64,000 bases of DNA, taken from positions 8,556,001-8,620,000 of the forward strand of contig OZ004614.1 in the NCBI GenBank assembly GCA_963924565.1, given 5' to 3'. The translations under genes and the position numbers were made by a program. The notes beneath the pieces were generated by a model. That model was given only the letters and a program-made list of their open reading frames with translations. It did no database searches and was not told the origin of the DNA. The first letter of the stretch is position 1, and every line of letters starts with the position of its first letter. Below, in pieces: positions 9,815 through 51,797 of this stretch. This stretch comes from Ascidiella aspersa. Lineage: Eukaryota.

Positions 9815-9929
9815 CTCTCTACAAAGACTAAATTATATCGTAAAATGGGCCTAACCCTTTTTTCTTGATGCCGATTCAATAACGTTATCACATACTAAAT
9901 TTCTTAAACAGTTTATTTTTCGTTTCTAG

Positions 9930-12900
9930 CATTTGCGTCGGAGACCACCGCAACATTTGCAAAAGGTAAGTATAACCTATAGGCATAAAACCTTTTGAAC
10001 TGCATGGTGAATATGAGGCCAAGTTACTTTTAAACACTTTAGATGATAGTGTCTCATAGATGTGTTATATAAACAAATTTTGTTTTAATTTTTTTATGTT
10101 TGAATGAGGTGGTAATCAATTATTTTATATCCCCCGTCCAAATACATATAAACGTATACTTTCTGTAATTTCTATTATATACCTTAACACCCTTAGTAGA
10201 AATCCGACTTGTGTGTAACCATTCATATTAACCTTTAAATCCATAAAATAGCCGCCCACAATTAATTACCTCTAAAGTTGTTAAAAAATCGTTGATTACA
10301 ATTTGTCATTTTTAAATCAAAATAAATCTTTTGCAAATATAAAATCCAGGGCTAAAAAGGTAATATTGTTAAAAGCAATCACTAACTATCCCACGTTAAA
10401 TTTACATACACGTGTGTTTGTTCGTAACTGGCATCAGTCACTTCTCTGTATCATTGCTAGGGGTCATTTTTATTTTGACCTAAAAAAAATCTTTACCGTA
10501 TTTTTTATGAAAATTTGACTTTATTTTAACCTAACGAAATTGCCTATTTGTAGAGGCCACAACTCTTCCTTAAATAATGCCAGTTACCCAAACATAATAT
10601 TTTGTCGAAAAGTCAAGGTGTTTCACAACTTATAAAACGTAGGCCTACGTCGTATTTTTTGGCGATAAATTTAGCTTGCTTAGGCATTTTGTATTACAGA
10701 ATGTCAGTAGTTACTGCTGATCCAAGTGGGCATTGTGACATATTTCCTACTTTTATGGGTTTATATCAGTGATTCTCAACCGCGGCTCTCAGAGCCGCAT
10801 GCGGCTCTCAACTGTACATTTTGCGGCTCTCACTAACGGAGTAAAAAAAATTAGTTAGCAGTAGCAGAATTGCAACAAAGGAAGTAAAAGAAAATAAAAG
10901 TGAATGCATTTGATCAGCAAGGATCCTGAGTACGAAGTACTAATTGTTCCCGGGAAGTACTTATGTTCCCCGGTACTTCCGTCCGGGTCTTTAAAATAAT
11001 TTTGTGGTTTGTGACGTCATAATATATTTAGTCTTGATCGACAAGCTATGGCAATAAGAAATAGCTGTTTCAACAGTGATAATTAGTTAGCCTAGGCTAG
11101 CGTAATGTATTTTTGTTGTTTTCTAGTTGCTTTCTTAATGTTTTTTTAATTATATGCCTACTGTTGTTTTTATGCGGCTCCTTGCAAACCTTAGGTTTGA
11201 AATGCGGCTCTGGCTCTATAAAAGGTTGAGAATCACTGGGTTATATGGTTTAATTGTGTCGCAGTTCCTGATTTACAATGCTTCCGCGACGATTTTTACA
11301 AAATATACTCTCAAGAAACACAAAAACTTTGTCAAAAGCCATAATTTAACAAAATTTTGCTTTATTTAAATTTTTGACTTTATTGAAAATTTTGACTTTA
11401 CATTGACATATAAACTTCTTAGAAGCAGTCCCCTAGGTGATTTGTGGCAAACGAGGACCTTATAAAATTTTGGCTTTATTGACTTTTGTTGGCTTAATCA
11501 TTACAACACCGGATTTCGTTTAAAAGCTTCATTTCGATATCGTAAAACAAAATGTTGTATTCGTGTGTTTTTTACACTTTGTTGCAAATTACTTTTAATG
11601 ATTTACGTTTCTGCAAATGTGAAACAATGACCCGCGCACACCGTTCAAAAGTTTAAATAAACCATGGCGAGATTTGCGGGTTGAATGTGTGAACTATTTT
11701 CATAATTACGACTGATATTATACTAACTATGCAATAGCGTTAGAAGCATCAGCTTTGACTGTACCGTGATTAATTACAGTAGGCTATTTTGGTGCCACAT
11801 CCTTCGGGGCTGGGTTATTACAATTTTGTAACGCGGAAATTCTACTTTTGTTTTGATTGCGTGGACCATGGTCGGCATGAATTTTTTAGAGATGACGTCA
11901 TAAAACTAATAAACTTAACTCACCTACTGTTTTTGTTTTAAAAATTGTGAAATGGAATCCGGAGTAAAATAACATTTAAGAAGAACGCACCAAAGCGTTT
12001 TGTTTTAATAATATGTATTAATAAAAAAAAACAATTTTAAGTCATACACTAATATTTTAGTTAGGCCTTCATGGACCCCCTTAAACTAGTCCACGCACCC
12101 CCAACGGGTCCACGGACCCCGGTTTAGAACCCCTTACTTACTCTGTCCAAAACTCTATTTTAAATAATAAACAAAAGGTATAACATATCTTTTAACAGAT
12201 GTCGTCGAGCGCCTTCGAAGCAACTCTGCTAATTTGACAGGGAACGTGGAAAACTTTAACTACTACAAGTTACCCTCACCTTGGAGAATTTACCGAATAT
12301 GGAAGGCCGGGCGAAGAGATGGAAACCATGTGAGCACAAATCTCAGACGCTTATTTATCTCGGCTATCTAATAGTAAACCATAAGATTAAATTTTAAACA
12401 AAATTTTGATTATTTATATCGGTGGTGTTCAAATGGCGGATCTCGATCTGCCATTTGTCAACTTCTTGTGCGCATCGTCCAATTTAGTTTCAAAAAAACT
12501 TTTTGCATTATTTCAGATTCAATGCAATTGTGAGTAGATCTAAACCAACTCATTATAAATATTTCTCACTGAAACAATCTTGCATACTTCACTTTTAACT
12601 TTTACAAGGTTATTAATATGTTGTAGGGTACATTAATAAAGCACACTAAAAATACCATGTCCAATATATTTGCTATTGTGTTTAGCGGATCATCATGTTG
12701 TCAGGTTTGACTGTGGCGGATCTTGACAGAAACCATTTCAACACATCTGATCTATGTTATTAATTATTAACTTTTTTAATATCGTTACCGGTACCTCAAA
12801 CAATTTTTTTTTTTTGAAATACTCTTTTCAGTGATTGAACAACACTAGAATGGCCTAATAAGTTGTATTTCTTACCCAAAAATGTTAAACAATCCCATAG

Positions 12901-15900
12901 GTTGGATACTACATTTTGCTTAACAGCCGTAACATATAGCAACATTATTCCATTGTCAAACTTCTATTTTTTATGTTTAAATTATGTTGTAATTGAATAA
13001 ACATTAAATAAATTAAAACAGAAAAGCTGTTTACTATATACTTTTTGAAATTTGAACTGCGGTTAAAAACAAACATTCTCACATTATGGATTACTTACTC
13101 CTTTGGTTAATTAAACCCCATTAGTCGTAACTCGTAATTATATCCCTATAGGATTAGGTTAACAAGAGCTGCCCGAACTAACTGCTAAAGAAAATGTTTC
13201 ATTAACCCATCGAACGCGTTTTCAGGTATCTTTCGAAGGAAAGAAAGGACCAAAACGTGCAATTTACAACAAAACTTACACGTGAGTTCAAAGGGAACGT
13301 CAGTATTTCGGTTGGCGCATCTGCCACAAATTAATTATCCCATGAGCGTGGCAAGTTCGGAAGAATCATGGAGGATAGTTAAACTGTGCCAAGCTTGCCT
13401 ATTTTTAATATAGCAACTATAGTGAGTTTATTCAGTCGTTTAAAAAGCGGTCGGATTCCATTGACTCTATAAGCTTGTTCTATTTATTTATACTTTCACC
13501 AGATTAGTAGGACGCTTTTAAAGGATGCCCCAAGTTTGGTTAATATATCGGAACCCGGCCTTTATATCAAAATGATCTGCAACATTTTTTATAGCCACGG
13601 GTCAATATTTGTGCGACCCTGAAGTAGCTTATATTCTTTATATTGCCTGACGTAATCAAAGTCAGGAATTTTGTAAGATTGAACGAGAAATGTATTTCGC
13701 TAATCTTTCTTTTATTTGTTGCCAAATATATCTCTCTGTAAGCGTAAATACAAACTGACTTTCATTTCTTATCAATTATCTTAATTATGTCACTTGCCGT
13801 ACCTGTAATACCTGTATTGGACATAACCACTTATCGCTTGGCTTGGAAATGGTTCGTTCCATATTAACTGGTTAGGACGTTGTATAAAACCGCATATATA
13901 ACATTTTTTAATTGGCTTTAGTAGATTATGAAAAGCATCGTTTAATCCAGTTCATTTCAGGGAACCTTTATTCACATTTACATCGTATGGTGTCACACCA
14001 TTCACAGCACTCTTTCTTCTCGGTGAAAAATCTGGTCCGGAAAAGTACGAAATAAAGGTCAGTGTTTATACTATTATGAAACATTGCTTCATGATTATTT
14101 TACGAAATTAGATTACGCATGCCATCACTGAAATAGTCCACTTAAACGCAATTTTGTGACCAGGTGCAGAGTTTCCCTACTTACATTAGCGTCGAAGAAG
14201 TCAAATTTGAGACTTTTGCGGGCTTGGTTTCAACGCGAAACTATACAATGCAATATGGAGGCGTGCAGGATTTCGCGCCCCAAGAACCAACGTTTTGCGA
14301 AGTTTACTTTTTTATGCCACTTTTTCCGGTAGGTATATGTGACAACTCGGATACCTTACTTTGACGGTTGTTAAAAATAGCAAATACATTAATTAATTGC
14401 AAGTGTAAAACATAGAAAAAAAGACTCGTTATTCCATGTACATTTTATTCAACATTTTTTCGCATTTATTAAGCTACACAAAAGATTGTTTTAATAATAC
14501 TTTAATTATAACTGCGGCGAAACGTCTGTCCAAATTTGTACCTGACGAATGCAGAGGGAACTCAAATACCATCTGGAACCACACCTTTTGATATAATTGT
14601 TTAATTGTTGAAAGTTTCATTCAAGAAAAAATAAATCTTTTGATATTTTCAACAGAACTCGAACCGTACTTTTGTTGTGTCGACGTCATATCACGATACT
14701 GGACGTCGTCCACGTTATAAAGATTATTCGAGAAACAGGGCTACGGTGAAGTCTGGTGGTGGTCAAGCTGTTCTTGGTTACATACTCTTGTCAAAGTAAG
14801 ATAGCTTTTAATAAATCTCGCAAAATACTAAAATTATAGTTTCTAAGCTCACGTAAAACTCGTTTGGTCAAAAAAGTGTCTAAGTCAAGTGGAAATGCGA
14901 AAGTATTCGTTTGCAAAATTAAAATAACCTAAATAGAGCTATTAGCTTTTTCTAAATTTTTCTATTTATAATTTCTACTTTCTTTTGCAGACCAACTGGT
15001 AAAACAATTTCGCAAAAAGAAATCAACGCAACAATGATGACGATGATGCATATCATATTGGATGGCGATCGAAGCGGTATGTCACGCATTGAGTGTTGCG
15101 AGTCGTAAGAAAGTTATCTCCCAGTGATGATCGTAGTTTACCCAATCTTTTACTCACACATGAGATATTTCAGTGGTTGCATGTCGATTTTTTGTTTAGT
15201 TTTACTTCTATACAGTGTAATTTATATGTCGACATATTCTAGGGCAGTGGTCGGCGGCCTTTTTCTAGTCGCGGGCCAAAACCAAACTTAGAAAGGTCTC
15301 CGCGGGACGCACAAATGTTAGCTAAGAATTGTGGTATTAAAATGTTAGAGCAACTGTCAATCAGGCGAACCTTGGACATTTTTTGCACTTAAAAACGTTT
15401 AATCACATTTACAGTGGCAGTAAATTGTTGACGCAAAGCGCGAAAAAAAGCGTTCGTTTGGTTAAAAATTCAAGTTCACACGTCGTCATCCTTGCTACTA
15501 ATGAAGAGTGTAATAAAACTACTTTCAGGGAACGCGATAACATTTAAAGTTAATCTTGCTCAGTGTTTGTTAACCGTTTTAAGTCAAGGCGCACCAGGTG
15601 AGCGAAGCGAGCGCGATTTTTTTTTGGCAAACAGATATTTCTGTTAAATTTTTTGCAAGCTTTTATTACATTGCCGAAAATAAAAAAATGTTAAAAAATA
15701 TATGTCCAATAATTTTGAATATGTTTTCCGTTTGTCTGCGACGCATTTGGCAGCCTTTTACGGCGCAACGGTAAAGAATCGCTGACCTAGTTAAAAAGGC
15801 AGCATCAATACGTGTACAAACCAAACATATAATGAACATTCGCGCGAAGCGCGAACATTTTTCGCAATTACGTAGTTAAATTAATCATAAAGTGTGTCAA

Positions 15901-18900
15901 ATAGACTCGTGTCTGGTTTGTCTAGGAGACGGCGGGCCGAATGGATTTCATCGGCGGGCCTGATCCGGCGCGCGGGCCGTAGGTTGCCGACCCCTGTTCT
16001 AGGGCGTCCACAAAGTTAAGCCAGGGCAGACATTTTAAGATTAATTCGGTTACGAATGACGTTTCAATTCTTTTTTTAACTTCCTTGTCAAATCATCGCA
16101 CGTAGTAATTTGGCCGACTTGCCACTTCACATTGTATCATTTGCATATAACCCGTAACGCTATACCAGTAAGGTAACTGCCCTGTTTAACGTGATCTCTT
16201 ATGGTCCGTTACTGATGTCGCTCAAGTGTGACCAATGCGCATGAGCTGGATGGGTAAAACGCATCACCACTCTAATACGTTATTCTAATGTATGCTTTGT
16301 TGACCGGAGTCGTTGAAAAATATCGTTTATGCTGTTGTATTCTGAGTATTTCGGATACGGTTGTAATTGTGATTGCATTAAACAGTGAGAATCAAATAAG
16401 TAAAGTGACGTTGCGTAGATCTCATTAAGTCGTTTCTGTACGGAATCCAAAACCCGATTTTTTAAGAGCCAGATGTATACGACGACCAGCCTTACCTCGT
16501 GTAAGAGACTTCAAGTTCCAATTGCCACATTATGGGTCCAATTGCCACATTTAAGTTTCGATTGCCACAGATTCGCTAAACGCTACAATATAAAGTCATT
16601 GCTTTCAATAGACATTTGAGTTTCCGAAAAGTACAATATTGGTTGTCCTTTGGTAAAAATGTTTCAAATAAATGGGCGAAATATTTTTCTTTATTAATCT
16701 ACAGAATTTCGCTATGGCTCTAGTTATTAAATGCTATTGACGAGGCTATTTTTATGTATATCTTGTTTTCAGAAATATTTCAGCGTATTCGGTCTAACAT
16801 TAGCAATCTTGCAAGGAAGGTCGACAACTTTTATTCTTACCCGATACCAGAACCTCCCGATGTATATTCGCTCACGTACAACAACATGTACTTTCCTGTT
16901 GGAAATCGAGTAAGAGCGTTTTAGCACTTGTAATATTTTACTTTAAAGCAAACAGATAATTTGCACGACAATGTAAGCTTTAAATGAACTGCTTTGAAAC
17001 AAGCTTCGAACCACAGTGAAATTTTGTGTTGTTTGTATTATATATACATATTTTTATACATGTTTTTATATTATCGTCACGCAAATTGTAAAAAAAAAAC
17101 TCGATTTGGGTCAAACTTGTATTCAGCTGTTATGCTTGTTTCAAAGTAGTACACGTAAAATATTTACTAATAGTTGTTTTTCCATAAAAATTACGACGTA
17201 TGAATAACACATAAAACAAGTTATGATTTCTTTCAGATCTATTATAAAGTTGGAAACACTTCCCGTGTGAGTGCAGCATACAACAAAACCTACACGTAAG
17301 TTAACACTCAATAAATCAGGTGTTTGTCAACGTGAACTATTATATTATCGTTCGGATATCACAAACTTGTGCTTACATCACAATTACACGTTTGCGATAA
17401 TTTTTTATCCACACTCATGAAACACCCGGTTGAGGTGTTTCAAATAGCGAGAAAATGACTTGAATTACTTAACACACATGTTAACAGACTCTTAAATAAA
17501 ATGATTGATCATGTAAAGCCAACGCGCATAAAAGAAATACAAATAATCTACACTTATGCGAGCTTTTTGGGGCCTTTTTCATTGTCTCTTGGTCGTTTCT
17601 CATATTTTCTCCGTTTTTCCATTTAATAAGAATGAGACACAAAACAGGTAATAGGTTATCGACTGTCCTTGGAATGGCCACGTAAACAGACTTTTTTTAG
17701 TCATTTATCGCTAATTAGTTTTTTAACTTTGAATACGATTGATAAACTGTAACACAGAACCTTGTGTAAACTTTTTAAGTCATTTATCTTTAATAGTTTT
17801 TTTAATATTGAGTAGCCTAAGATTGACAAACTGCAACACAAGACCTTAATAATCCGGTGAATCTCGTCTTCATTACTTTCAGGGGTCCGTCGTATATCTT
17901 TGCCATTGTCGCAATGCACCCCATGACAGCGATGTATTTTCTTGACGCCAATTCAGGCCCAGAAAGTTACTCGATAGAGGTCAGTGTATCTGTGATTTCT
18001 AACATAGTTTGTCTTATTGGTCTTACGATATGTAATTACCCGAATTTAAAACAAAAAAATTGCTTTTTGGAAACAGGTTGATTCCCGGCTGTCAATTGGC
18101 CGCTATGGGATTCTTCGGACTTTCAATGGTTCGGTTTCTTTGCGAAATTATACTCTTAAATACGAAGGCGTTCAAATTTACATGGGGCGGCGTTACTCCA
18201 GTGTTTGTGAGGTTTACTTTTATCTTCCCCTAACATCGGTAAGTGATATAGGATACATATGCGACTACATATGCTAGAAAACATTTTTTTTGCTTAATCC
18301 CACACAGGTAACCTTACGTTGTAGTTTAATTCAAGTTTACAATTTACTAAATATATAATTTGAGCACGTTTGGTCAAATTCAATTTACTCTCGTGAGTCA
18401 GTTTTTCCTGATGTTAACAAGCAGCTTTTCTTTGCAGAATTCAAACCGCAAGTTTTCAGTGCTAATACCAGATCGTGGGAGACAGAGTTTTAAAAACAAG
18501 GCGTCGGTCGAGTCCGGAAAAGGTGAAGCCGTCATCGGATACACACTTTTATCAAAGTGAGAAGAAAACAGTTTCCTATACTACTCTTCATCAACTTAAC
18601 GAATGACTAAGCGTGTTTAAAACAACATCTTTATTCTGGGTAAAATCGTGTGGCCAAATGTTTACTTAATGTTAGCAAACCAGTCGGGCGGTTTAAACGA
18701 TTTGTCTCCGATCTTTATAAAGTTATGGATTATCTGTTCACTTCACTAGATACCAACCACATCTATACTTCAGCATTGTTATAACTTAAATAACTTTGTT
18801 TAACGCAAAATATTTAAGCAACATATTTGGCTTAGCGGGATAAGTTAAATGGTAAGTTTGACGAAACCCGATCATTTTTGTTCTAGTAAAACAACCCCTC

Positions 18901-21900
18901 TTCCATTTTAACCAAATAGAAAATCAACAGTCTCGTATTATTTGCCGAATATAATCATGACATTACAGACAAAAAGCCGAACAAATATGGAATGAGGAAA
19001 TCAAGGCAATCATGCTGACAATGCTTCACATTATTTTGGGAGTTGACCAATCAGGTAAACCCATGGACGCCTCTGTTGTATTTAATAGTTCCAGTTACAG
19101 CTTTAAAAAACAATCGAGTTTCGGCTTAAAAAAAAGATAAACAAAACAAAACGAAATTCAAAACGTCACAAATTTTCTCTTAACCAGTTGTTGCACTTGT
19201 TGAAAAAATATAATTTCGACACTACATCTTATTCTGACATGCGTTGTTATAAAGTAGCCTATTACAAATTTGAAATATCAAAACACGGTTTTAAAGGCAA
19301 CCTATATTGGATCATTTAGAGCTTTATATTTTGCATTAGTCGCCAGTACTTGGACCACCTGGTCAGCTGATGGCTCAAGTTGTCGACAAAAGGGAACTCA
19401 GTCAAGAACCCGAAACTGCACCAGCGGACATTGCTTGAAAACGTCCAACATAGTTGAAGTGCAAAAACGACCATGTAGCGCACCGGCCTGGGTAGAAGGT
19501 AAGAGTGTTGGAAATAAGTTTTTGTCAAGATTAAGTTCCAAGTCGACTCATTTTCGAAAAAATGTTACGTCAGATCACGATCCAAGTCATTGGCCTAAAG
19601 TGAGATCCATGTCACGTCACATTCTAAATTATTTTTTATCTACAACATCGCTGAACAAGACCAATTCTGAGCAATAGTTTGCATCGCAAACACCAAGAAC
19701 AAAACAAATAGCAAGTTGCGACTATTAGTTGGCGAAAATAATCCAATAGTCAAACAAGTAATTTAAAACGTTGATTTAAGTGCACTTAACACTATAGGTA
19801 CGACTTTACGCAATAACCTTTGCGGTTCATGTACGAAGTTAGTTTCTTGATTAGGATTTATATATGTTTATTGTTATGGTATCCGAAACCTTTGAGAGTA
19901 GATTCCTGTTGTTCGATTATAAAGCTTGACTTACTGGTATTACGTAAGTAAAATGTAAAGTTAAAATACTCTTCTAAAACATACGATCAAATGTTTGATT
20001 AAATTTGAGGGAATATATACGTATCAACAACCTAATGTTTTTTGTATACCAGTAAAAGCGAACATTCAGATTAAATGCGCTGTTTTTTGTATATATCACG
20101 TTGTAGGAATCTTCAAGCGTGTTCGAGCCAACTCCCCCAAAATCGGGAGAAACGTCAAGCGGTTTTACGCCTATTTTTATGACAAAGAATCGTCGAATGT
20201 TATTTTAGAAAGTTCTCATATAGGGAGAGATTACGTGAGTATTGCCAAATCAACGGGATAAAAGTACAATGTTTTCCAAGTTGCTTCACGATTTTATAAG
20301 TTGTGTGTGTCCGATATAATTGCTTATTACTTAAAAATTGTACGTAAGAAATATTTTGTACGTAATGTATAAGGCCATAAAATTGTACGTAAAGTATTAG
20401 GCCCAAATCTTAATTTAAACTGCACGATGTTTAGAAAGACTACTATTAATTGGGCGGTGCATTTGTAGTGATTTGCATAGTCATAAATTCCTAGAAGAAT
20501 GCTCTGTGTAAACATAATCGCACTGTGTTCGCGTACACGAAAATACCAATTTGAATAGTATCATGGAATTTTCGTTGAGCAAAGAAATATTTAGGTAGCG
20601 TTATATATTGATGTCATCAACATATATACTTTAGAAGAAACCTGCTGTTTTTAGTCCAACAAAAATGGAACTCCAATGAAGTTTAACTATACATCAAGGA
20701 AATTCGACTTAGCTTTTTTTTAATGCACTCTTTTTTATTACGTTCTATTTGGCAAATAATATACTAAGTTGTTGATAGGTTTGGACCACCAAAAACTAGT
20801 TTACCTACCCCAGTTTATAAACCCCAACCCAGAATGGTATACGCTCCCAGAGTGCCCAAACCTGGTAATTTTGTTACTATATAGCAGTGTTTCGTAACCT
20901 TTTTACTTGGGGGCGCACCTATAGCTATTTTAAAACGTTGCGGCGCAAATTGCAAGCGAAGCAAATTTTTAAGGTGTATCTGTATTTCTCTTAAATTTCT
21001 TGCCATTTTTTATAATATAGGCTTTATAGATGCATATCTTTAAAGAGATCCAGCCTTGAGCCCAAAATGAGAACAACGTCAACTTCGGAATAATAGCATG
21101 TCGAAATCGGAATCAGACCTAAATGGCCAAAATAAGGCCAATACAACCTTTTATCTAACCCCAAACACAGCCCATAACTAACACCAACTCTCCGAATATT
21201 TTTAACCCTAGCCCAATTGCTAACACCACCATTTACCGCCTATAAGCCCAAACAGAGGTAAAAAATCCGGGGCCAAAACACGGCCAATGCCAGACATGTG
21301 TCCCCCAATCATCCTATACCCTTTGCTACAGTCCTGGGCGTAATTTTGGCTCATTGCGATTAATTTAGAGCTTAATTCGACATGTTTAGGTCTTATCAAG
21401 ACTATTTTAGATTTTATTCTGTCGTGGTCATTAATGCGAATTTTGCGTTATTATGTCGGTGGTCTTAGTACTTTGGTATTATAGATTATCTGTTTTAGAT
21501 ATTGTTGCTTTGTAGGTATTCTTGTGTTTTCTACTTGAAAGTACTGTGGAATCAATGAGCTAAGCCTAATCGAAAAGTAAAAACACATGTTTTATATATT
21601 AAACTACATTTTTCTTTTGCTCGCGGCGCATCTGGCAGCCTTCCATAGCGCACCGGTTGAGGAACGCTGCTATATAGTTTCAAAGAAAATAACCTCATTT
21701 CACGAACTATTTGTGATGAATAAAATTTCAGGTGTATTTTAAAGTGGGACAAGAGCCTCCGCGACGTGCAACGTACGATACAAGTTACTCGTAAGTACAG
21801 GGAAACAACGTAAAACCAAGAGCCTTAAATAGTGTATAACATCACTAATGGTATAAACATCTAAAATTTAATTTTGAAATTATAGCAATACTTGAGCCAG

Positions 21901-24900: not shown

Positions 24901-27900
24901 ATATGTTAAGTTTCGATGTCGATATATAATCTGGGTGAAAAAAGTGTGATTAGTTTTTTACTCATTTCGTTGGGGTCTTGTACTCTGACAAGACACATGT
25001 GACTGAAATTGACTTTTACACAAACCGTTTTAATCCTTTTAATTTTATTGGATGACAAGTAAACAACACAAACGTTTGCTGCCTTTTGCCACTATTCTAA
25101 CTTTTCCATATTCAGCTTGCTGTCTACCAATCAATATTATGGAAATTGCCTTTCTACAGAAATATTCGAGCGCTTTCTATCAGAACGTGGCATTCTTACA
25201 TGGCACGTCGAAAACTTTCACCGCTACTTGCTGCCAATTCCCAAGGAGGTGTCTCATTTTATCGACCATTTAGTGGAGAAACACAACAGACGAAACTATG
25301 TGAGTTTGATTAAACGACTTAAAAGATCTTTAACAAAAGCGGCTGAGGACGCATAGGTAATACACACAACTGCTAGTAGGTCCTTTTTTAACCTAAAGAA
25401 ATGCCAGTTAACATTAAACGGCAGACATTTTGCAATTTAAAGTGCATATAAGTGACACAAGTCACCGGTGCATTCCGAGAGCGTACATACATACTGGAAA
25501 TAAAAATAAGACATTTGCTTATTTGTCGGAACACACGTTTTCTCCGATCTATCGAATCACTTTTTTTTTAAACATTCTTCTATTATGTTTTGTCGCTCTA
25601 CATCAAATTGACGTACCATACTATGTTTAAACTTGTAAGATAATAGCAAAATATGCAATGCAGCTTGACAACAAAATGTAACCTAAACTGAAAATAGCGT
25701 ATAGTCAATTCGTAATAATTATTAACGTGGAATAAGCTTCGGTGTGCACCTTCGGCATGATCCGCATCTTTATAACTGGCAATGTAAAGCCACCATAAGA
25801 CGCATTAACAAATGATGAAATCCTATAATTTTACCTGTAATGAAGGATCGTCTCGGATATTTTAATTAGTTTTTATTCTTTCTAACCCTCCTATCGTATT
25901 TAACCTACCAGCTGAGTGTCTCAGTCCATCAGATCATAATTTAGGTTAGTTTATAGTACATGCGGTGAATCTGCCTAAAAATCACGAAATCTTCTATCTA
26001 CGTGCTACAGTCACCTGTTCAAAGCCAGTCAAGCAGGGCTATTGTGTACGAAAATATTTTCGTTCCAGGTATCATTCAAAGTGGGAGAAGCGCCATTTAA
26101 AACTGCTATTTACAACAGGAAATACACGTAAGTTAGTAAACGTAAAGCAGTTACACACACTGCATGTGTTTTTGGCCAATCAGGCGATTAACTTAAATAG
26201 AATGCATCATTGGACAATTTCTAATGTTATGTCTTTTAAGTGGGCCGTCGTATACCTTTACAACATTCGCAACACATCCTTTTGGAGCAATGTTTCTGCT
26301 TAAAAGCAATTCTAGCCTTGAACGTTACGTAATTTCGGTGAGCATACGATTTTATATTTTATTGGTTAAAATTTTTAACAGATTACTGAAAATGCTACAT
26401 TCTTAAAAGGTATATTCAGATTTCGCTAGATGTAGCAAGGTTGAAGATTTTCATGGATCTGTTACTTGGCTTAACTACACGATGAAATATGGAGGTGCGC
26501 AGACATTTTCCACCAGGACTTCAACGGCTTGTAAAATCCTATTTTTCTTACCGCTGACTACGGTAAGAAGTCTGGAATAATTATTTTGTGAGCCTTGGTA
26601 ATTCTCATTTTTTTTCTCCACTTTGAAAATTGCCCTAAACATGCAAAATAAACTTGACATGTTTTCATTAATTAGGCTATTCAATCAATTCAAAAATATC
26701 ATACAGGGTTAATGATATGTGATGTTCAAACTAAAATGCGCAGTAAACTTTACCTTTTGTAAAGAAGTTAAATAATGTGAATTTATTTTCGTTCTTGACC
26801 ATCTAAGACTGTTTATAAGACAGATACAGATAAAACATAAAATCATTTCTTAAATTTTTACAGAAATATATAGCCTATTTCGCCGACGAACTGACGATGC
26901 CTTATAGGCGAAAAATATAATTCTGTAAAATTTGTTTTTCTGTTTTAATAAACAGTCTTAGATCATCTGAATATTTTATTTACATTTTATTGTCTGCAGG
27001 AGATTCCTTACTTCCTAAAGTGTTTCAGTTTTCTTGACCACATTTTAGTCTTTTACAACAAAAATCATAATGGTTCTACAGAAACTCTTTTGAGAAGCAC
27101 TTAAATAGAAAGCTATCGAGAAGTGACCTTGTCAAATAAAATATTACTGGGTAAAAATACAAAGAAGTAGTAATAACTAACGCATATTTATTGTTAATAA
27201 CTGTGAAAATAATCATTTCCAATACAAGTTTCCTTCATAAAATTTAAATCACAATATTGGATGCAAATCATCAATTATTGGTAGAGGTATCAGCTTTTCT
27301 AAAGTAAATATAAAAATTCAAATTGAAGTCCATAATAAACATGCCTTGTCCATTCCGTTGATCCATTAGGGGAGGTGCGGGACCCATGGAACGGATTTGT
27401 TTTTTCCGTAATATCTTTCGAATTACAACTCAAAAACACTCGCTGTTATTTTCTTTGGAAAGCTTACAGCTATGGATACCTACAATCCCACATGGAAAAA
27501 ATAATTTAAATCTGACATATCCTTCTAAGTTAAAAAAAAACTTTTTTTTTCCATTGGTCCCACCCCACAGGACTTATGGGACCTATGGAACAGAGCATGA
27601 CTGCATCTCAAAAGACTGCGCTGAGTATTCGTGAAGTGTATAACTACTCTGTTAATGGTGTATTAATAGTGGCACAAGAAAATGTATTTGGAGAAATTAA
27701 ATAAAACACAGGGAAACAGGCACACAATGCTGAAATGATATTTTTTTTATTTCTGGTCTAATTTGCACCCCAGGTTTATTATATCAATTGTTTTTATTTT
27801 TTAGGAGAACATATCAAAATATAATAATAATAGTCAAATGTACGAATTTGTCGAGTACCGACTCTGACTCTACAGCCTGTATTCAGCCCAAATACGTAAC

Positions 27901-30900
27901 TAAATACGGTAGATGTTCAGCAATCCACTTATAGGGTTATCATATAATTCATCCACTCACAATAACTGGTTCGAAGATATCCACCATATTCTATTCCGCA
28001 TGTTACAAACTGCAATTGACGGCAATATTGGTTTTTGGTACTGCGCATGCGCACGTCGGACACGGGAATCTGTTAGTGTTACGTGGTCTGGTCTTACTCG
28101 AGTCTCGAGTCCGAATCCTTCGAGGCCCGAGTCCGACTCCGCACCCCTGGTCCTCAGTGAAACAACCCATTATTAGATGTTCTTGTCTTAAAAGTTGGCA
28201 TACTAATATCCTTAAAACCTAAAAATATGATTAAAAAATTTTCAAGAGACCAAGGGAACAAACTGTTCCAAGGGTCCTCTAATCGCCATTTTTAATAAAA
28301 ACACTCATGACTAGCCAGTACTCTGAACCAAATTAATTAAACTAACTTTCAACCTGTACCTAGATAACCCCTCTCTCCACAAAAAAATATTCACTGATTT
28401 ACAATTAACTTAAGACTATTAAAACAACTTACGAATGTCAAGCTACAAAGTACATTTTTCACTTTTTTTTTGTTTAGTACATTTTTCACCCACAAAAGTG
28501 AAAAATTGGATTAAATCACCCATTCCAAAAGCATGCTACAGAGTTTTTGGAAAAAGTTCTTAGCACAAAATCTCATCTCATTCCCTCAACCTAAATTTTA
28601 TTTAGTTCTGCCAACAGGGGGCGCAATATGCCATTGGTCCATTGGTCCCTATGTTCCATGGATCCAGCACTTCCCCTACGTGAAGGTTTCTATGTAATAT
28701 TAACAAATGATGCTCACGAGTGTCATATATCCCAGCCTTGGAAGTACGTTAATGAAAGATCAGCGATTGTTTTCTAACTTCTAGAAATCAAATCGCGAAT
28801 TCAATTTGTCGTACACTTTTCCAACACGACGGAGTGAAGCAGTTAATGCGTCGGTTTGGTCTGGCGATGGGGCTTCAGTGCTTGGATACACTCTCTTATC
28901 AAAGTAAGATTTGTCCGCATTACGCTTGACGAACTGATTTGCTCAATAAATATGTGATTATACATCTTCTTGTTTGACAAAATGTGAACATGTGTGAAGC
29001 TATCCTTATTTTGATCAACGGTGTTATACATACTTTTTATATTGGGATCCATAATGCAAACACATTAATATCCGGCTAATAATGTTTTAGATAGTAGGCC
29101 TACAGTTATAACTCTTGTCTTCTGAAGCAACTTTTATTGATTTAAACGAACTATGCAGACCCGTCGGAATAAAATGTTCAGAAGATGAAATTAAGACCGC
29201 AATGCGAACAATGATGCATATCATTTTGGGAGGTGATAAAGCAGGTAAATTAAGGTTTTGTATTTTAACATCTTTTAGTCCTACGTTCCACTTTTTCATT
29301 TAACGATGTGACTGAAAATCATTTTCGAATAAATTGTACGGCATATTTAAATCTAGTTAGAGAAGCAAAACAACTAAGTGTACAGAAAGCTTAAAACATT
29401 TCTGCGGATTTTACCAATAAATTCCTTGTAATTTGGCATTTTCGACAAACTGCCTCACTAATTACTTCACTCACGTGAATTTATTTCAAATTCCCAGTCT
29501 TTATATTATTTGATTTAGCTTAAATTAGACTAGGTCATATTGTCCAACATGGTTTACTGGAATGGAAAACCTTTTCCACTACGAAAACAACAAAGAAAAA
29601 ATCGTGTTCCATCGAATCTCCTGTTAAAGTTAATGAGAAACACCTCGGTTAATTCGCATTTATTTTTGGCTTTTTTGTCGATCCACCTCAAAAAAATTGA
29701 TGTAGATAAAAATGCCCTGCTTTTTTGTTGGGCGCTAAATTTTTAAAAGGAGTATTCTGTATCTTGTAAATTGCATGTTTTACTTTATTAAAGAAATCCT
29801 TGAGCGCGTTCGATCCAACTCGTGTAATCTCACAAGAGACGTCGCACATAATTACCCCTTCCCGTTGCCCACCCATTCTGAGGAAACCCTAATGAAAGAA
29901 GGTGGAAGATATTCAAAGGTGGAAAATGTATTCAAAACAGGAAATCAGGTGAGCCAAATACAACCACGAAATAATGCGCAGAGCCTGACATAAAAGCCCG
30001 TTTTTGGTTTACCAACATATTTTAGATCAGTTTTTCTTAATCGGGTGAATCGATCACCCCAGGGTGAATAAAATTTTTGCAGGGGTGAACCAACCAAATG
30101 GAGTGAATAAGGGTGTACTGTCAGAAATTGAGGATAATTCCAGGTGTTCTGCGGATATTCCGGGTGTTCTGTTATATATAGACGAGATAGTTTTATTGTA
30201 TACAAGGGTGAATGAAAAAGACAAGGGTGAATGAAATATGGAGATAAATGCTAGGGGTGAACAAAACTAAAAAAGTTTAAGAAGCACTGTTTTAGATCAT
30301 GTGAACTTAACTGCCGTCGAAATGCTGCACCAATATATTTATTCATTTTCAACTAAATTAAAAAATATGTAGATATACATTATTGTACAAATTATATACA
30401 ATGCGAAATATAATGAATTGTCAGGATTTTAACAAGTGCCCTACATTTTGTGTTATAAATTGTCACCACCAACACAGGCTAATGGTAATTTACCGTATCA
30501 AACCTTAGTTCAAGTCAAGTTAGTCATAAAACGAAATCAATAAAGTCAACGCAATTTAAATAGATGTTTTGCTTACAATTGCTTGAGACGTTACTCTTCT
30601 GCATTTCAGTTGTATTTCAAAATTGGTGACGAGCCTCGACAACTTGTTGTGTACAACAAAACTTACAGGTCAGTAAAATGTTGGCAAATAACGATACAAA
30701 TTGAATTGTCTCGACGAAAAACCAATCGCTCCGGAAGGAAAAGTCCATTGTGTATTTATTATGAGTTAACTGCAATTAATTTGGAGTTTGTTTAGAAAAG
30801 TGGCGTTGTCCTTTATTTGGATGATTTTGTCTTCAGCGGTATTATTTAAAGGTTTTGTTAGCTTTTGACTACCGCTGGTTTTCGTTAATCTATACCAAGA

Positions 30901-33900
30901 GTTCCTAAACTGTGGTCCATGAACCCCTTGGGGGTTCGCAAACTAGTTTTAGTGGACCCATAAGTACCTAATTGAAATATAGTGAATTATTAAGAAATAT
31001 TTAAAGTTTCAAATAAACAGTGTTGAATAAAAATTTAAACGTTTTAGAACTGACTGTATTTAGACTCTATTTTACTTTTACATTTTTGGACATAAATAAG
31101 TCTATCTATGAACTCTATTTGTATTGTGACGTCATTTTTGAAAAAAGTTTCGCCTAACGAAGCAAAACTAAATTTTAGGGGTCCGCAGCAAAAATGTTTA
31201 AGAAACCCTGATAAAAAAAATAAGTTTCTTAATTCTTTTTTTCAGAGGTCCATCGTATACATTTGCAACCTTTGCTGTACATCCGTTTACAGCAGTCTTT
31301 CTTCTAAATGAAAAATCGGGTCCTCAACATTACTCAATAGAGGTGTGCAAAACACGTTTTTCGATTGCATTTCATCATTTAGTCAACGTAGTCTTAGCGT
31401 TTACCTATTTCGTCTGGATGACTTTGTCAAATTTACAGGTGGTCTCCGAATTCGAAACAAAAGTCCGTGGCTTGTTTGAGACGTTCGAAGGCTCGGTTTT
31501 CTTTCAAAACTACACTCTCAAGTATCGAGGCACGCAACTGTCCTCCAAAAAGGATCCAACGGCTTGCGAAGTTTACTTTTTCCTGCCGCTCACTCCAGTA
31601 AGTGGTAGCTGGGCCCAACTAGGGATGTCTGATTAATTATTTTTTGCTACTCGGCAAGTTGGATAAAAAGTATCGCGATCTTATCCCATACCGAATAACT
31701 TCATTACTATTATCAAATAAGCGATATAGTTGAAAATGTAATAAGATTTCTTCCAGTTTTTTTTGTCATGATTTGCTTTTAGATAAGATGTTTTAGTTAC
31801 CTCCAGTCGCGAACCAACTTTTTTTAAAGTGCACCTTTCAAGGTTAAAATCGAGTACATTGCGGTTATAATTTTAATAGGCCAAACTTGGAGAGTATTCT
31901 GGATAGCTAACAGGAAAGGCTTTTGGGAAACACTTTTTGTTCCGCTTCAGAATTCAAACCGCACTCTCGTCCTGTGGCCAAAAGAGCGCGAAATTCCTTC
32001 GTATAAACATGGAAGGAAAACAGAAAATCTTGCTTTTGTCCGATCGGGAGGCGGCAAGGCCGTGTTCGGATATACTCTTCTTTCGAAGTAAGTTTCTCAT
32101 ATGTGACTAAAATTTAACGGTTCTAAGCGTTTTGTTGACAACAGTCCGTGTAAATAATTTTTCAGTCAAAATGGCTCTGCTCAGAAGGTAAGGGTGGTAA
32201 GAGTGGTAGGCTACGACGTCCGCAGCAGGCACAATAGGAAAACGCAGTTTCTTAAAAAAAGGATTTTTGTTAAGAAACAGGGGTAGCTATTTCATGAGAT
32301 TGAAGGGAACGGTAGTCGTGAAATATAATCTACAAGCTAAAGATAAACAAAATTTAATTTTCTCTTTAACCAAATTTAAATAAACTCACACAAAATGCAT
32401 TGTTACTCCTTGCTTATCTGTTCTTGAAAGCACCCAATTAAACATTTAAACAAAGTTATATCCATTCATAGCAGGTGCATTCATGTTACTCGTTTGTTTC
32501 TAAATAAGTGCTGTTACGTTGAGAAATAATGGTTGCTCGACCAACGATATATCAACTTCGCAGGCCTTCTGGTGAGAAAATAGCCATAAAAGAAATCAAT
32601 GAGACGATGTTTGCCATGATTCATATCCTTGTGGGAGCTGATTACTCAGGTAAAGTCGCTCGTGTTACGCTATACATATGTTTGTGTACAAGTTTTGACA
32701 ATCAGTCAATATATACGTGCTTTCATGTAATTACTTAGTTGCTAGATAATAATATATACCGGTGCATTGCTAGATAATACTGGTACACTTTAGCCGCGTG
32801 TCTACATTAATGGGTAAATTAAAATAAAAAAAGAATACAATCTACATTTAATTTACATTGCTACATGTCGTTTATTTGGTGTTTTTTATTTGAATTATTG
32901 CTTAGAATCGGACGAACCAATTTTAATGTAGTTTTGTTTTATTGTTATATCGGTGATTTGACTTTGAGTTGACTTGCTATAATAATAATGAATTGACTTG
33001 GACTTTATTTTGGAAACTGGTGACTTGGACTCCGATTTGACTACGAATTAAAGACCCGACTTGATCTTAAGGCATTTCACGAATGGCCTGACTGAGACTA
33101 TATTCAGTTTGAAATGACTTGTTTACAACTCTGTAGATTGAAAATCATATTTTTTGCACAATTATCCGCTACATCTTGAAATTAAAAATAAATGATCCAT
33201 ACTCTGCACATCTATAATTATAAACTAGGCCTATACCATATAAATTATCGCCTTAAAAGAGGCCAATTTTGTACACACATTGCAAATGGAATTTTACTTC
33301 AGCAAAGGAACACAAGATAACAAGGCAGATTATTTAGGAAATTCACAACATAAATATTGGATGTTTCCATTAATTTGTCAATGGCAAACATTCATAAAAA
33401 TTATGCCGAAAAATCGCACAGAAAATTTATTTCGTTAAAAAGACTAACAAGAAAACGCAAATTGCAAAACGATGACATTTTTTTTAGTGTCCTCCAAAGA
33501 CCATGCATTTTTTTGAAAAAGAGGACATATGTTATACCTATCATAGATAAACCTATGTGCAGTATACAATTTATTTATACAATTAGGTTTCATTTTGTTG
33601 AAGTTGGATTATTAAACTGGTTGCGAGATAACTATTGATTGTTGGTAAAATGTTATATCAAATTAAGTTTGGAGTCGTTGGACATCTTGGTCGGCCAGCC
33701 CTATCAGTTGTCGCGTGTACGGGATCCAAATAAGAAGCCGAAGTTGCACCAGCGGCCCATGTCTGCAAACTTCCATCACTTACCAAACCCAAAGTCGTCC
33801 ATTCAGTGGTTTAAAATGCGTCGCTAAAGGTATGCATTAGTTTATTCTGTGCAAATCGAACCATTTTGTTGGTGAACGATTATTGACAGATAATTTGTAC

Positions 33901-36489
33901 CTTTAAACTTCAGAGTTTTCAAGGAAGAAAACTATAGCATAATAAAATCAAGTCATTCAGTTTATTTCAAAGCTATCGTTTCCCCAAATGTGAAGCAAGG
34001 GTTGAAATATATTTGACATAGGAGTATCGTTACCAAAAATCGTATTGCTTTAGAATTGTTCGAGCGCTTTTTAAAGATGTCGTTCAGTCTTAGACGGCAA
34101 ATCGACAATTTTCACTTGTATGAGTTTCCGAGATTTCGGAGAGGATCAGCAACTGTAATATATGACGGAGGAAGGGATATGTTTGACGTAGGAAATAAGG
34201 CAAGTGCCGTGTTCTTATATAATGTGTGTGAGAAATACTGTTATAAAAAATGTTTTAGATTTTAGAGCATTTTTTAGTATGGCGTTTCGGGTTGCTTATT
34301 CTTACTGTTCTATGAAATAGGTATTATCGTGACTTCATAGTTAATTAAGGATAATCTAACTACCGTGCCGTACCAACCACCGGTTCAGCTTCTGCACTTC
34401 TGCACCAGAAAAAAGCCCCCACATTGCTAGACTCTGTTGTAAAATATATATGACTTCTAACATAATAGACCTGGTAGATTTTGATTTATAAATAGTACAG
34501 AGATAGTACTTTGTAGCTTTTTCTTTATCGTTTATTAATTGTTAATTTTTGACGATATAAAAATACAGCGTGTCCTAAAATAAATAGAATATTACATTTT
34601 AATACCAAAACAAAACTCGTTTAACTTGGTAACATTTTATGTGAGCTCATATAATGAAATCTTGAGTTCAACTGAGTTATGAAAAAGTTAGGGCTATAAA
34701 TGACTTTAGCTATAAATAACAGTAAGGAATCAAGACACGGGGTTCTAAACTAATAATTTGTATTTATTACTGCTAAAAACTGATTTTATACCTAACAAAA
34801 ATATCTTAACTGAATACTATTGTATATGGGAGCCACATACTAGAGTTTGTAGTGGACCCCAACTGGCGAAGATACGGCTCTGCCTAAGTCTGAGTTTTGA
34901 AATAAACGAACCGATATGATTCTGTGATGTTGTTGTCATAAATAAAATCCCCTCAGCAACCCATCTGCATGGTGCAACTGGGAGCTGTCTTGGACAGAAT
35001 ATATACATTAAATATGCAACAGATGCAATCAGGTATATTGTTACTGTTTTTTTTTTTCATTCTCTGTCCTCAATAACTTACACGAATATTAAATAACTCC
35101 GCGACATTTATCTATACTTTTGAAAAAATATATTCATATACAACTTTTAATGTTCAGCAATAAAGTTATATTTCCAGGTTTACTTCAAAGTGGGAAATGC
35201 GAGACGTCAACAAGCAATTTACGACAGAAGATACTCGTAAATATGTTAATTTTATTAGTGGTTGTCCCTTTAAAACATGTAGCATACCTTTTTTTTTTAA
35301 ATTATTATCAGAGGTGCATCGTACATTTTTGAAACCTTCACCGCACATCCGTTCACCGCATTTTTTGTTATTGATTTTGAAGCCGGGCCAGGGCAATACT
35401 CTATAGAGGTAACATTGATGAAGGAGAGATAAGGACTTTGTTCGAAAACGACCTTCTTAATTTAGCCTAAAAATAACGATTCTCTGCACTTTGAAAGGTA
35501 AATTCAAATCTCGGAGCTGATGGAAGGGGCAAGTTTGGTACTTTTGATGGTTTACTTATTTTCCAAAACATTATCTTGCAATATGGTGGCGCCCAAGTGT
35601 ATTCTGCCGGCGATGCAACAGTTTGCGAGGTGTACTTTTACCTGCCCCTCACTGGAGTAAGTATATTCGAATTCTTAGCCAATTGTTTAACGATGTTTTT
35701 TATCTGAAAAATTAAATCATAATGTCTGCTAATAATTTCTGAAAGCGACAAAAACTATTTGCCTATTCGGCAAATTTTCTAAATAATTTTAATTTCCCGT
35801 TAATAGGACCAATTAAGTTTGTCTATCAAAATTTTAATCCCAAATATATTGTGCTTTGAAAAAGTTCGGCCATGTTGATTATGCTTGATGATACTACAAA
35901 TTTAGTGTTTGATACCTGGTAGGCTACACCAGAATTTCAATAATTGGTATTTGTCATTAAATTAGCAGGCAAAAAGGCCAGACATTGGAGTAGTTAATGA
36001 TTTCGTTCCACTTCCTACCCTGGTGGGATATATTTTAAGTTGGTTAAATCATATTTAAACATTCCGTGAAAAACGCTGGTTTTGCTTTCAGGATACGAGC
36101 CCCAAACTAATTGTGTCAACACCTGATCGAAAGAAGTATTATATGAAAAACAAAGCGTCAGTTCAATCCAAAAGTGGTCTAGCTGTTCTCGGATACACTC
36201 TCTTGTCAAAGTGAGAATTGCACTTTAACAAATAAAATCAAACCAATAAAAAGTTGCATCAACTGAAGAACTTAATAAAAAAATGTCATCACTGTTTGTA
36301 TACCCTAATTACACTCAATACTAAATATATGCCACTCGTTTTCTAAGAAAAAGCCAAAGTACGTTCATTTGCTTGTCTATTTGGAATGTAACTCAAAACT
36401 TTATCCTTTGCAGAACTGATGGTGCTGAAATTTCCAAAGAAGAAATCAAGGCAACTATGTCTAAAATGATGAAAATTATTTTGATTTAG
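9930..36489 (+). CDS. Large multi-exon gene: six copies of an unnamed ~220-aa domain plus three TSR (thrombospondin type-1) modules; probably secreted; start codon not resolved
   Basis: Forty AG..GT(GC)-bounded exons splice into one open frame ending at TAG 36487-36489 (about 1,490 codons from 12199). A 36-nt phase 1-1 exon at 9930-9965 (xFASETTATFAK) precedes R1. Each repeat uses six exons with intron phases 1-0-2-0-0-2-1. The third exon is 97 nt in all six repeats; the last is 86 nt in five. Shared motifs: YNKTY, HPFTAxF, NYTLxYxG, CEVYFxLPLT, GYTLLSK, EIxxTMxxMxHIILG. Confidence 0.88.
10767..11238. mobile_element. hAT-type MITE
   Basis: TIR CAGTGATTCTCAACC..GGTTGAGAATCACTG, TSD gtttatat/ggttatat, GCGGCTC subterminal repeats. 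Confidence 0.85.
12199..15076 (+). CDS. Repeat module R1 of the + strand gene
   Basis: Exons 12199-12329, 13226-13281, 13961-14057, 14164-14328, 14656-14795, 14991-15076: DVVERLRSNSANLTGNVENF..AIYNKTYT..TPFTALFLL..NYTMQYGG..CEVYFFMPLFP..AVLGYILLSK..MMTMMHIILDGDRS. Confidence 0.85.
15245..15996. mobile_element. hAT (Buster/Charlie-like) non-autonomous element, same family as 53855-54586
   Basis: Ends CAGTGGTCGGC..GTTGCCGACCCCTG, perfect TSD ttctaggg, GCGGGCC subterminal repeats. Confidence 0.88.
16773..19054 (+). CDS. Repeat module R2
   Basis: Exons 16773-16909, 17237-17295, 17883-17979, 18077-18238, 18438-18556, 18969-19054: EIFQRIRSN..AYNKTYT..HPMTAMYFL..NYTLKYEG..CEVYFYLPLTS..AVIGYTLLSK..MLTMLHIILGVDQS. 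Confidence 0.85.
19340..19498 (+). CDS. TSR module T1 (single phase 1-1 exon)
   Basis: VASTWTTWSADGSSCRQKGTQSRTRNCTSGHCLKTSNIVEVQKRPCSAPAWVE: WxxW, QxRxRxC and a terminal Cys as in TSP1 repeats; flanked by ttag and gtaag. Confidence 0.85.
20107..24136 (+). CDS. Repeat module R3
   Basis: Exons 20107-20234, 21732-21790, 22158-22254, 22753-22911, 23601-23719, 24051-24136: GIFKRVRAN..VYFKVG..RPFTAMFVL..NYTLQF..CEVYYLLPLTS..AVFGYTLLSK..MMSMMHLILGIDQQ. Confidence 0.85.
20885..21669. mobile_element. hAT-type MITE with a nested Helitron-like repeat (21045-21295)
   Basis: Ends CAGTGTTTCGTAACC..GGTTGAGGAACGCTG, perfect TSD ctatatag. Confidence 0.75.
21898..22093. mobile_element. hAT-type MITE (related fragment at ~27850-28149)
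   Basis: TIR CAGGGCTGCGGAGTCGG..CCGACTCCGCAGCCCTG, TSD acttgagc/acttaagc. Confidence 0.85.
24598..24756 (+). CDS. TSR module T2 (single phase 1-1 exon)
   Basis: VWSHWSQWSSCPDNCPGQQTQIRLRSCIIGPCPQNNSRVERETRPCSIPVWVA: canonical WxxWxxWxxC...QxRxRxC...ExRxC. Confidence 0.9.
25160..29244 (+). CDS. Repeat module R4
   Basis: Exons 25160-25299, 26069-26127, 26241-26337, 26410-26562, 28785-28903, 29159-29244: EIFERFLS..AIYNRKYT..HPFGAMFLL..NYTMKYGG..CKILFFLPLTT..VLGYTLLSK..MRTMMHIILGGDKA. Confidence 0.85.
26801..26963 (+). repeat. Fold-back inverted repeat with a hammerhead-like core in its loop
   Basis: atctaagactgtttat..aaatttttacagaa..tatttcgcc pairs with ggcgaaaaata..ttctgtaaaattt..ataaacagtcttagat; CTGACGA-T-GCCT(TAT)AGGC-GAAA at 26891-26913. 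Confidence 0.6.
27369..28676. mobile_element. TIR element flanked by TA, containing a nested MITE fragment
   Basis: ta-GGGGAGGTGCGGGACCCATGGAAC .. GTTCCATGGATCCAGCACTTCCCC-ta. Confidence 0.7.
29794..32649 (+). CDS. Repeat module R5
   Basis: Exons 29794-29948, 30610-30668, 31246-31342, 31439-31597, 31951-32087, 32564-32649: EILERVRSN..VYNKTYR..HPFTAVFLL..NYTLKYRG..CEVYFFLPLTP..AVFGYTLLSK..MFAMIHILVGADYS. Confidence 0.85.
30028..30289. mobile_element. hAT-type MITE
   Basis: Ends CAGTTTTTCTTAA..TTAAGAAGCACTG, perfect TSD ttttagat, GGGTGAA repeats. Confidence 0.8.
33668..33829 (+). CDS. TSR module T3 (single phase 1-1 exon, divergent)
   Basis: VWSRWTSWSASPISCRVYGIQIRSRSCTSGPCLQTSITYQTQSRPFSGLKCVAK. 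Confidence 0.82.
34054..36489 (+). CDS. Repeat module R6 (C-terminal, ends at stop)
   Basis: Exons 34054-34199 (GC donor), 35178-35236, 35312-35408, 35498-35656, 36092-36210, 36414-36489: ..IYDGGRDMFDVGNK..HPFTAFF..SNLGADGRG..VYSAGDATVCEVYFYLPLTG..AVLGYTLLSK..MSKMMKIILI*. Confidence 0.85.
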
Positions 36490-51356: not shown

Positions 51357-51797
51357 TTTGGAGAAACAAAGGCCTGAAGCTACAATAAAGCTTTGCTTAA
51401 CATATTAATTATAGAAATGTTACAAAAGATCCAAATATTTTGTTTTATATCGTGAATTATAGTTGTAGCACTATTTGGAATAAATGTTAGCTAAATATGC
51501 ATGAAATTCTGTTTTAACCACAATAAGCACAATGCAGCGAATACAGAATATGCCGTTACTTTGAGAAACGTGGGACTCCATTGTAGGGGCATTACTAGAT
51601 CCCGCATTGTTTTAGAAACAAAATGTAACATCTAAAATTTGCTGTGAATACCAGGAACCGGAAAAGTAGGTTTTTGTAATACGTGCTCACGAGCAGGACA
51701 ATTAATCGCCTTGTGCTTCCAAGATGTGTTACATTTCCACTATTTTAAAATATTTAACTTCATAAACTGAACCTGAATAAAACGGCGTGCTTTCGAC

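Follow-up and report, generated by a model that had tools for sequence, protein, structure and literature searches.

Tunicates, the sister group of the vertebrates, are alone among animals in making cellulose, yet in many of their matrix proteins no domain can be recognised. The proteins closest to the gene described here are LOC104266555 of Ciona intestinalis (XP_078491493.1), CAB3263223.1 of Phallusia mammillata, LOC143469517, LOC143447129, LOC143447335 and LOC143453091 of Clavelina lepadiformis, and LOC120342439 and LOC120335290 of Styela clava; in the literature on LOC104266555 or on tunicate-specific domains, no description of this family was found. We analyzed a 64,000-nucleotide (nt) stretch of the Ascidiella aspersa genome, hereafter the window (OZ004614.1:8,556,001–8,620,000; assembly GCA_963924565.1, 308.6 Mb), which contains no N and has a G+C content of ~35%. 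Its + strand carries a 40-exon gene at 9930–36489 that encodes six copies of a domain without a name, interspersed with three modules that resemble thrombospondin type-1 repeats (TSRs). The explanation that best accounts for the data, and that we hold with moderate confidence, is that the product is a ~1,500-residue secreted, multivalent glycan- or matrix-binding protein that belongs to a young, fast-evolving gene cluster.

A preliminary description of the window had proposed that 40 exons splice into one intact frame. To reconstruct the gene, the + strand was translated from stop to stop and the resulting pieces were compared with one another by self-BLASTP, which returned six exon families (A–F) with six members each in constant order, and a seventh, the TSR exons, with three. 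Exon borders were placed at homologous AG acceptors and GT donors, and split codons at the junctions were checked by script; sequence searches took single exons one by one. The gene comprises one short exon (E0), six A–F cassettes (R1–R6) and three TSR exons (T1–T3) that follow cassettes 2, 3 and 5. All 40 exons have AG acceptors; 38 donors are GT and one is GC (A6, AAG|GCAAGT, kept in the paralogues), while the last exon runs to the stop. No stop occurs inside an exon or in a split codon, the summed exon length is 4,502 nt, and the frame terminates in TAG at 36487–36489. Each cassette recurs with phases 1-0-2-0-0-2-1, as first described; the near-invariance of exon sizes held less strictly, with C at 97 nt in six of six cassettes, B at 59 nt except in R1 (56 nt), and F at 86 nt in R1–R5 only.

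The gene opens in the window with E0 (9930–9965; 36 nt, phase 1 to 1), which lies between an AG acceptor and a GTAAGT donor and encodes x-FASETTATFAK. R1 (12199–15076) consists of A 12199–12329, B 13226–13281, C 13961–14057, D 14164–14328, E 14656–14795 and F 14991–15076, and R2 (16773–19054) of A 16773–16909, B 17237–17295, C 17883–17979, D 18077–18238, E 18438–18556 and F 18969–19054. T1 (19340–19498; 159 nt, phase 1 to 1) precedes R3 (20107–24136; A 20107–20234, B 21732–21790, C 22158–22254, D 22753–22911, E 23601–23719, F 24051–24136), and T2 (24598–24756; 159 nt) precedes R4 (25160–29244; A 25160–25299, B 26069–26127, C 26241–26337, D 26410–26562, E 28785–28903, F 29159–29244). R5 (29794–32649) comprises A 29794–29948, B 30610–30668, C 31246–31342, D 31439–31597, E 31951–32087 and F 32564–32649; it is followed by T3 (33668–33829; 162 nt) and by R6 (34054–36491), with A 34054–34199, which carries the GC donor, B 35178–35236, C 35312–35408, D 35498–35656, E 36092–36210 and F 36414–36491. 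All of these features lie on the + strand.

Transcription was queried with raw stranded reads from one run of the same species label, mapped to 31000–36900. The first mate lies on the − strand throughout the coverage, which in the usual stranded library denotes + strand RNA. Seven GT..AG joints are each crossed by 5–17 reads: 31342|31439, 31597|31951, 32087|32564, 32649|33668 (which joins R5 to T3), 35408|35498, 35656|36092 and 36210|36414, the last of which sets the beginning of F6 at 36414. The GC-AG joint 34199|35178 is represented by one read and one contig. Two further joints are drawn from loose ends, B5|C5 (8 reads) and 33829|34054, T3 to A6 (one contig from run X3, library type unrecorded). 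The check that the preliminary description had proposed, a search for spliced reads across the junctions, yielded ten RNA-backed junctions, all in the last 5.9 kb of the gene. Two intronic observations belong to the same region. A block at 34546–34939 in the A6–B6 intron has an RNA depth of 3–5 on the gene's strand and lacks an open frame. Its full-length matches are the homologous introns of three paralogues and of a near-identical twin of the gene introduced below, so that it does not count as a dispersed repeat; the block may represent an alternative or terminal exon, or else an RNA of its own. The C5–D5 intron (31343–31438) is 96 nt long, a multiple of three, and neither the window nor five paralogues have a stop in it; its translation would insert a hydrophobic stretch of 32 residues, and the RNA reads show its removal by splicing.

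On its contig the gene sits in a cluster of at least six young paralogues, itself included (dS ~0.05, the synonymous divergence). A profile built from the C and D exons has at least 140 matches in the A. aspersa genome, which cluster on the window's own contig (8.52–9.0 and 10.0–10.2 Mb) and on contig C2 (25.74–25.79 Mb) and are scattered on C1, C3 and C6. We compared four − strand neighbours on the same contig with the window gene. In all four paralogues, 40 of 40 exons were found in order, most of them gap-free at the same size (A2, E5, A6 and F6 being the exceptions); exon identity to the four ranges from 84 to 100% (88–100% for R1 exons), the gap-free exons contain no stops, and the introns have a median identity of 93%. 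The whole gene has a near-identical twin 411 kb downstream (contig positions 8976677–9004099), ~100% identical over test stretches, and a second pair, of − strand paralogues, shows duplication at the same 411-kb offset. The twin reflects either a segmental duplication of recent date or a haplotype left uncollapsed in the assembly. Taken together, splice sites, phases, the lack of stops, RNA junctions and paralogue collinearity confirm the single open frame: the gene is real, spliced as first proposed and transcribed from the + strand, an ordinary intron-rich, unannotated-looking ascidian gene.

Whether the window copy itself is transcribed bears on the possibility that it is a decaying or non-productive duplicate that has lost its start and whose expression comes from the paralogues. 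At three sites that distinguish the window from all four paralogues, the window-type base is present in 6/11, 1/6 and 3/11 reads, and at a fourth, scorable in three paralogues, in 8/13 reads. The alternative base in the reads is that of the paralogues, and the reads are accordingly a mix of window-type and paralogue-type alleles; transcription therefore comes from the window copy, or from the near-identical twin at 411 kb, as well as from the paralogues. These window-specific bases argue against decay, as do an uninterrupted 4,502-nt frame across 40 exons and the integrity of all the splice sites.

The ends of the gene supply most of the evidence on the other side. The start of the initial model at 9930 did not stand, and the 5′ end is incomplete: E0 opens in phase 1 at a conserved acceptor and is devoid of an ATG, no in-frame ATG was found just before it either, and no ATG-bearing first exon was found in the sequence upstream of E0, including by comparison with the four paralogues. 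E0 is nonetheless a real coding exon: among its differences from the four paralogues, one replacement stands against ~4 silent changes. It resembles the last part of a signal peptide and is not the first exon. A 2-nt indel between copies upstream of E0 excludes a longer frame; upstream frames differ between the paralogues. A conserved ATG ~60 nt upstream of E0 was rejected as the start, being followed by a stop after four codons; the resulting mini-open reading frame (ATG xCG ATT CAA stop, 9868–9882) is kept in the window and in all four paralogues and is a possible upstream open reading frame (ORF).

A second candidate ATG block is present in three paralogues and reads ACG, disrupted, in the window, which would suit a copy that has lost its start; it is absent from paralogue B too, which casts doubt on it as the start. 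A 3.5-kb tandem duplication (2840–6315 and 6341–9812, 93–100% identical) ends 118 nt before E0, and its position directly upstream can be counted for decay, as can the overall weak constraint described below. The duplication carries a TATAAAA block (~9283; copy at ~5786) that is strongly conserved upstream of the four paralogues. At the 3′ end the TAG at 36487–36489 was borne out, and the end of the model at 36489 was not: F6 runs on to 36491, from where eight reads continue into letters matching 37086–37115 on the + strand (2 mismatches), the start of a 3′ untranslated region (UTR) exon. The stop hence lies 2 nt before the last intron, and the 3′ UTR is split. The reference has TG in place of AG before 37086, a further mark that decay would explain. 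Weighing the intact frame and the window-type reads against these marks, we judge a decaying copy improbable.

The three TSR exons share W4, W7, R22, R24, C14 and C26 as invariant positions. T1 contains WTTW and the R-x-R layer, T2 WSHWSQWS, and T3 WSRWTSWS. A T1–T3 profile searched against the PDB retrieved TSR proteins in 17 of 17 matches (best E 1.3e-4). In Pfam, T2 and T3 scored 20.2 bits (E 7e-4) and 16.7 bits against TSP_1 (PF00090), for which the cut-off is 21.6, and T1 gave weak matches to TSP1 variants; all three exons thus stay below the gathering threshold. They contain 4, 5 and 4 Cys, respectively, short of the six-Cys, three-disulfide pattern of a TSR. Despite the sub-threshold Pfam scores, the Trp ladder, the Arg layer and the TSR-specific PDB matches uphold the earlier assignment, and support reading T1–T3 as degenerate TSRs.

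The repeated domain had been described as one that matches nothing named, and the searches agree. Pfam, run on ten single exons and on full-length tunicate relatives, returned no family for the domain itself, and a PDB sequence search with relative P0009, a metagenome ORF, found nothing. Among 1.84 billion representative proteins, the C+D profile recovered 21; those with names are “uncharacterized” proteins of P. mammillata, C. intestinalis, C. lepadiformis and S. clava, with unnamed ORFs of JGI, ENA and Logan assemblies making up the remainder. When 5.8 billion proteins were searched by words, P0014 (also a metagenome ORF) and P0005 as queries found two and five proteins, respectively, little beyond the first set, the named ones all tunicate. 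No relative of the domain turned up in a metagenome scan or, with P0009 as query, in a scan of prokaryote genomes; weak profile matches to P0008, P0010 (from a Desulfobulbaceae metagenome-assembled genome) and P0013 were dismissed as chance, having no match to the full-domain hidden Markov model (HMM). The ESM Atlas gave no usable match with P0009 and, with P0007, scores of at most 0.83 to clusters of a sialidase-like carbohydrate-binding module, Laminin_G_3 and GH59_C, which we treat as a lead only.

The domain HMM has 211 states; the 80 instances behind it come from the retrieved sequences, both tunicate proteins and unnamed metagenome or transcriptome ORFs. It matches the tunicate relatives with E values of 1e-52 to 1e-82 per domain. 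On the window repeats its matches run in the order A (states 5–58), C (60–97), D (91–146) and E (141–192), with D6 the best (E 2e-15); they are collinear on the gene's exons A–F and occur nowhere else in the window. The best relative is 26–52% identical to the window exons, hence the window's species is not represented by proteins in the collections searched. In the relatives, the Pfam neighbours of the domain are CUB, Sushi, Ig, WSC, VWD, C8, TIL and Trypsin; such company, and the symmetric phase-1 borders, bear out the proposal of a mobile extracellular module. As judged from these comparisons, we have a domain family of ~215 residues, encoded by six exons with phase-1 bounds, which lacks both a Pfam model and a described function and whose named members are so far exclusively from tunicates.

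Five motifs mark the family, DGGxDxYDxGN, HPF, GxDGxG, DPSxCE[VL]YF and GYxLLS, and most domains of the relatives hold all five. In the window protein, R6 keeps five of five, R5 three, R2 and R4 two each, and R1 and R3 one, which in R1 is GYxLLS; in R4, CEVYF is replaced by CKILF. Conservation of motifs across all copies, as at first described, therefore applies to G[YF][TI]LLS (6/6), and less so to CEVY[FY] (5/6), to strict HPF (3/6) and to the M.H[IL][IL][LV]G helix (4/6). The sequons N-x-S/T number 21 in R1–R5, with none in R6, and ISDGGRDMFDEGNK is kept in R6 of the paralogues. By homology, the window repeats appear to be members of the family, with R1–R5 degenerate.

Structures were predicted with AlphaFold2 (AF2) for two natural relatives, P0007 and P0006, from alignments that included the window exons as fragments. 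P0007, a Sushi domain followed by two copies of the domain, gave a predicted local distance difference test (pLDDT) of 85–97 over both; P0006, with one domain that lacks the first helix, gave a predicted template modelling (pTM) score of 0.82. The models of these relatives place an N-terminal helix in the first half of exon A, then a ~12-strand β-sandwich, and a C-terminal amphipathic helix in exon F, in keeping with the amphipathic terminal helix of the preliminary description. VIA-align against 48,161 chains listed, for both models, almost only galactose-mutarotase-like supersandwich domains: the N-domains of glycoside hydrolase (GH) families GH65, GH94, GH116, GH15 and GH63, the C-domains of GH38 and of polysaccharide lyases, aldose 1-epimerases and YidC P1. 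Foldseek, which on the whole two-domain model produced unspecific tandem alignments, was run on the single-domain model and placed 7fe3_A first (E 7.9e-4, probability 1.0), the chain that is first in two aligners.

On these models, the domain likely belongs to the galactose-mutarotase-like supersandwich fold class, which is seen in glycoside phosphorylases, hydrolases and lyases. One could hold instead that the likeness reflects a common β-sandwich arrangement, and that the domain is a protein–protein adhesion or scaffold module unrelated to carbohydrate; the structure-match scores are only moderately above the level that the tool calls common. Since the same chain leads in two aligners and ~45 of the top 50 rows fall into one fold class in each of two independent models, we give the adhesion-module reading little credence.

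The reading that we prefer, a secreted protein that binds glycans or matrix, combines this fold class with the partner domains and the motifs. Secretion, as earlier suggested, is consistent with the signal-peptide-like N-termini of the relatives and with the absence of any membrane-like stretch: no exon contains a hydrophobic 19-residue window of ≥1.6. The signal peptide was not seen in the window gene itself, its first exon not having been found. Glycan or matrix binding would follow from the fold class, the WSC and TSR partners, and the acidic Gly-rich loops in hairpins at what is presumed to be a single edge of the sandwich. R6, canonical and last, keeps the acidic Gly-rich loops DGGxDMFDxGN and GADGxG together with D-A/P-S/T-x-CEVYF, which may form a ligand or Ca2+ site. 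In domains 1–5, the loops are lost and N-glycan sequons gained, and these domains may serve as spacers or variable surfaces; the TSRs would add C-mannosylated modules that bind glycosaminoglycan or matrix. We infer a division of labour between the canonical R6 and the degenerate, glycosylated R1–R5.

Several points weigh against this interpretation. The structures were predicted for relatives 25–50% identical to the window protein and not for that protein itself; the proximity of the motif loops is deduced from strand order alone, and the fold assignment comes with no sequence alignment to solved supersandwich members. Because neither a start codon nor a first exon was located, secretion is read from relatives and composition. 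The reads are not assignable to the window copy as opposed to its twin at 411 kb. Finally, constraint on the protein is weak.

That weak constraint is also the ground on which the main rival stands, namely that the protein evolves fast and serves recognition (of an immune, self/non-self or gamete kind), that R1–R3 contact the ligand, that the clustered paralogues form a repertoire, and that the link of the fold to sugar is irrelevant. Between copies, the overall ratio of replacement to silent divergence (dN/dS) is 0.63–0.73. The TSR exons are under purifying selection (0.13–0.32), and the ratio reaches 1.0–1.55 in A exons and 0.8–1.6 in D exons. It is ~1 or more in R1–R3, where the excess of replacements is located, and R3 is the most diverged between paralogues (dN ~0.08). 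Recognition would also suit the at least six young paralogues with their further clusters, the mosaic identity among paralogues (some exons at 100%, others at 85–90%), which suggests gene conversion with local divergence, and the many variant alleles among the reads. However, the counts are small and the pairwise comparisons not independent, and a dN/dS of ~1 with 30–40 changes is equally expected from relaxed constraint on degenerate domains; as calculated from these sequences, the pattern shows weak constraint and not, by itself, positive selection. The WSC domain is a carbohydrate-binding domain, and its presence as a partner in one relative would speak for sugar. The dN/dS data do not separate a recognition protein from one that reads glycan or matrix; on balance we regard recognition as unlikely, while giving it more weight than any other competitor.

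For the origin of the domain within the glycan-binding reading, the uptake of cellulose synthase by an early tunicate, which is accepted, offers a precedent. By analogy, an early tunicate would have acquired the accessory supersandwich domain of some microbial carbohydrate-active enzyme, and its descendant would be a module that binds glycan or cellulose and has no catalytic role. Exon shuffling would then have carried this module, an innovation of tunicates connected with their cellulose tunic, into proteins with CUB, Sushi, Ig, WSC and TSR domains. We put this forward as a long shot.

The window holds further elements. An ORF at 47666–49117 (+), 483 residues long, has a weak match to the reverse-transcriptase family RVT_1 (E 4.7e-6, below threshold) and lies in the sole G+C-richer stretch (46%). 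A direct duplication, 50323–52667 and 61204–62824 (offset ~10.7 kb), is diverged, with its copies 80–93% identical; each holds a − strand ORF that opens with the signal-peptide-like MA(T/Q)FSVIFCLAF and for which no Pfam family was found. A dispersed repeat, 15237–16002 and 53847–54592 (80–88% identical), has its first copy inside the F1–A2 intron.

A domain family that had neither a Pfam model nor a described function is now defined, with a testable fold and a testable class of ligand. The arrangement of one canonical beside five degenerate, glycosylated domains, in a young and fast-diverging cluster, further offers a compact system in which to follow decay versus new specificity in repeated binding modules. 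Set against known systems, the TSR exons share with thrombospondin-1, properdin, UNC5 and apicomplexan TRAP/MIC2 the W-x-x-W ladder, the R-x-R layer and the phase-1 intron bounds; they differ in holding 4–5 of the 6 canonical Cys, and outside the TSRs the protein has no relation to those families. The galactose-mutarotase-like supersandwich domains show no sequence similarity to the tunicate domain (4–12% identity), which is smaller (~12 strands), has flanking helices, and stands alone, unaccompanied by a catalytic domain, as the repeat unit of an extracellular mosaic protein in an animal. The tunicate LOC104266555-like proteins are closest: none has a described function, and those scanned contain no TSRs, of which the window protein has three, but they share with it the same ~210-residue domain (in 2–8 tandem copies), the motif set and the extracellular partners, and they differ in that the full set of five is retained by the majority of their domains, a state that in the window protein is confined to the sixth.

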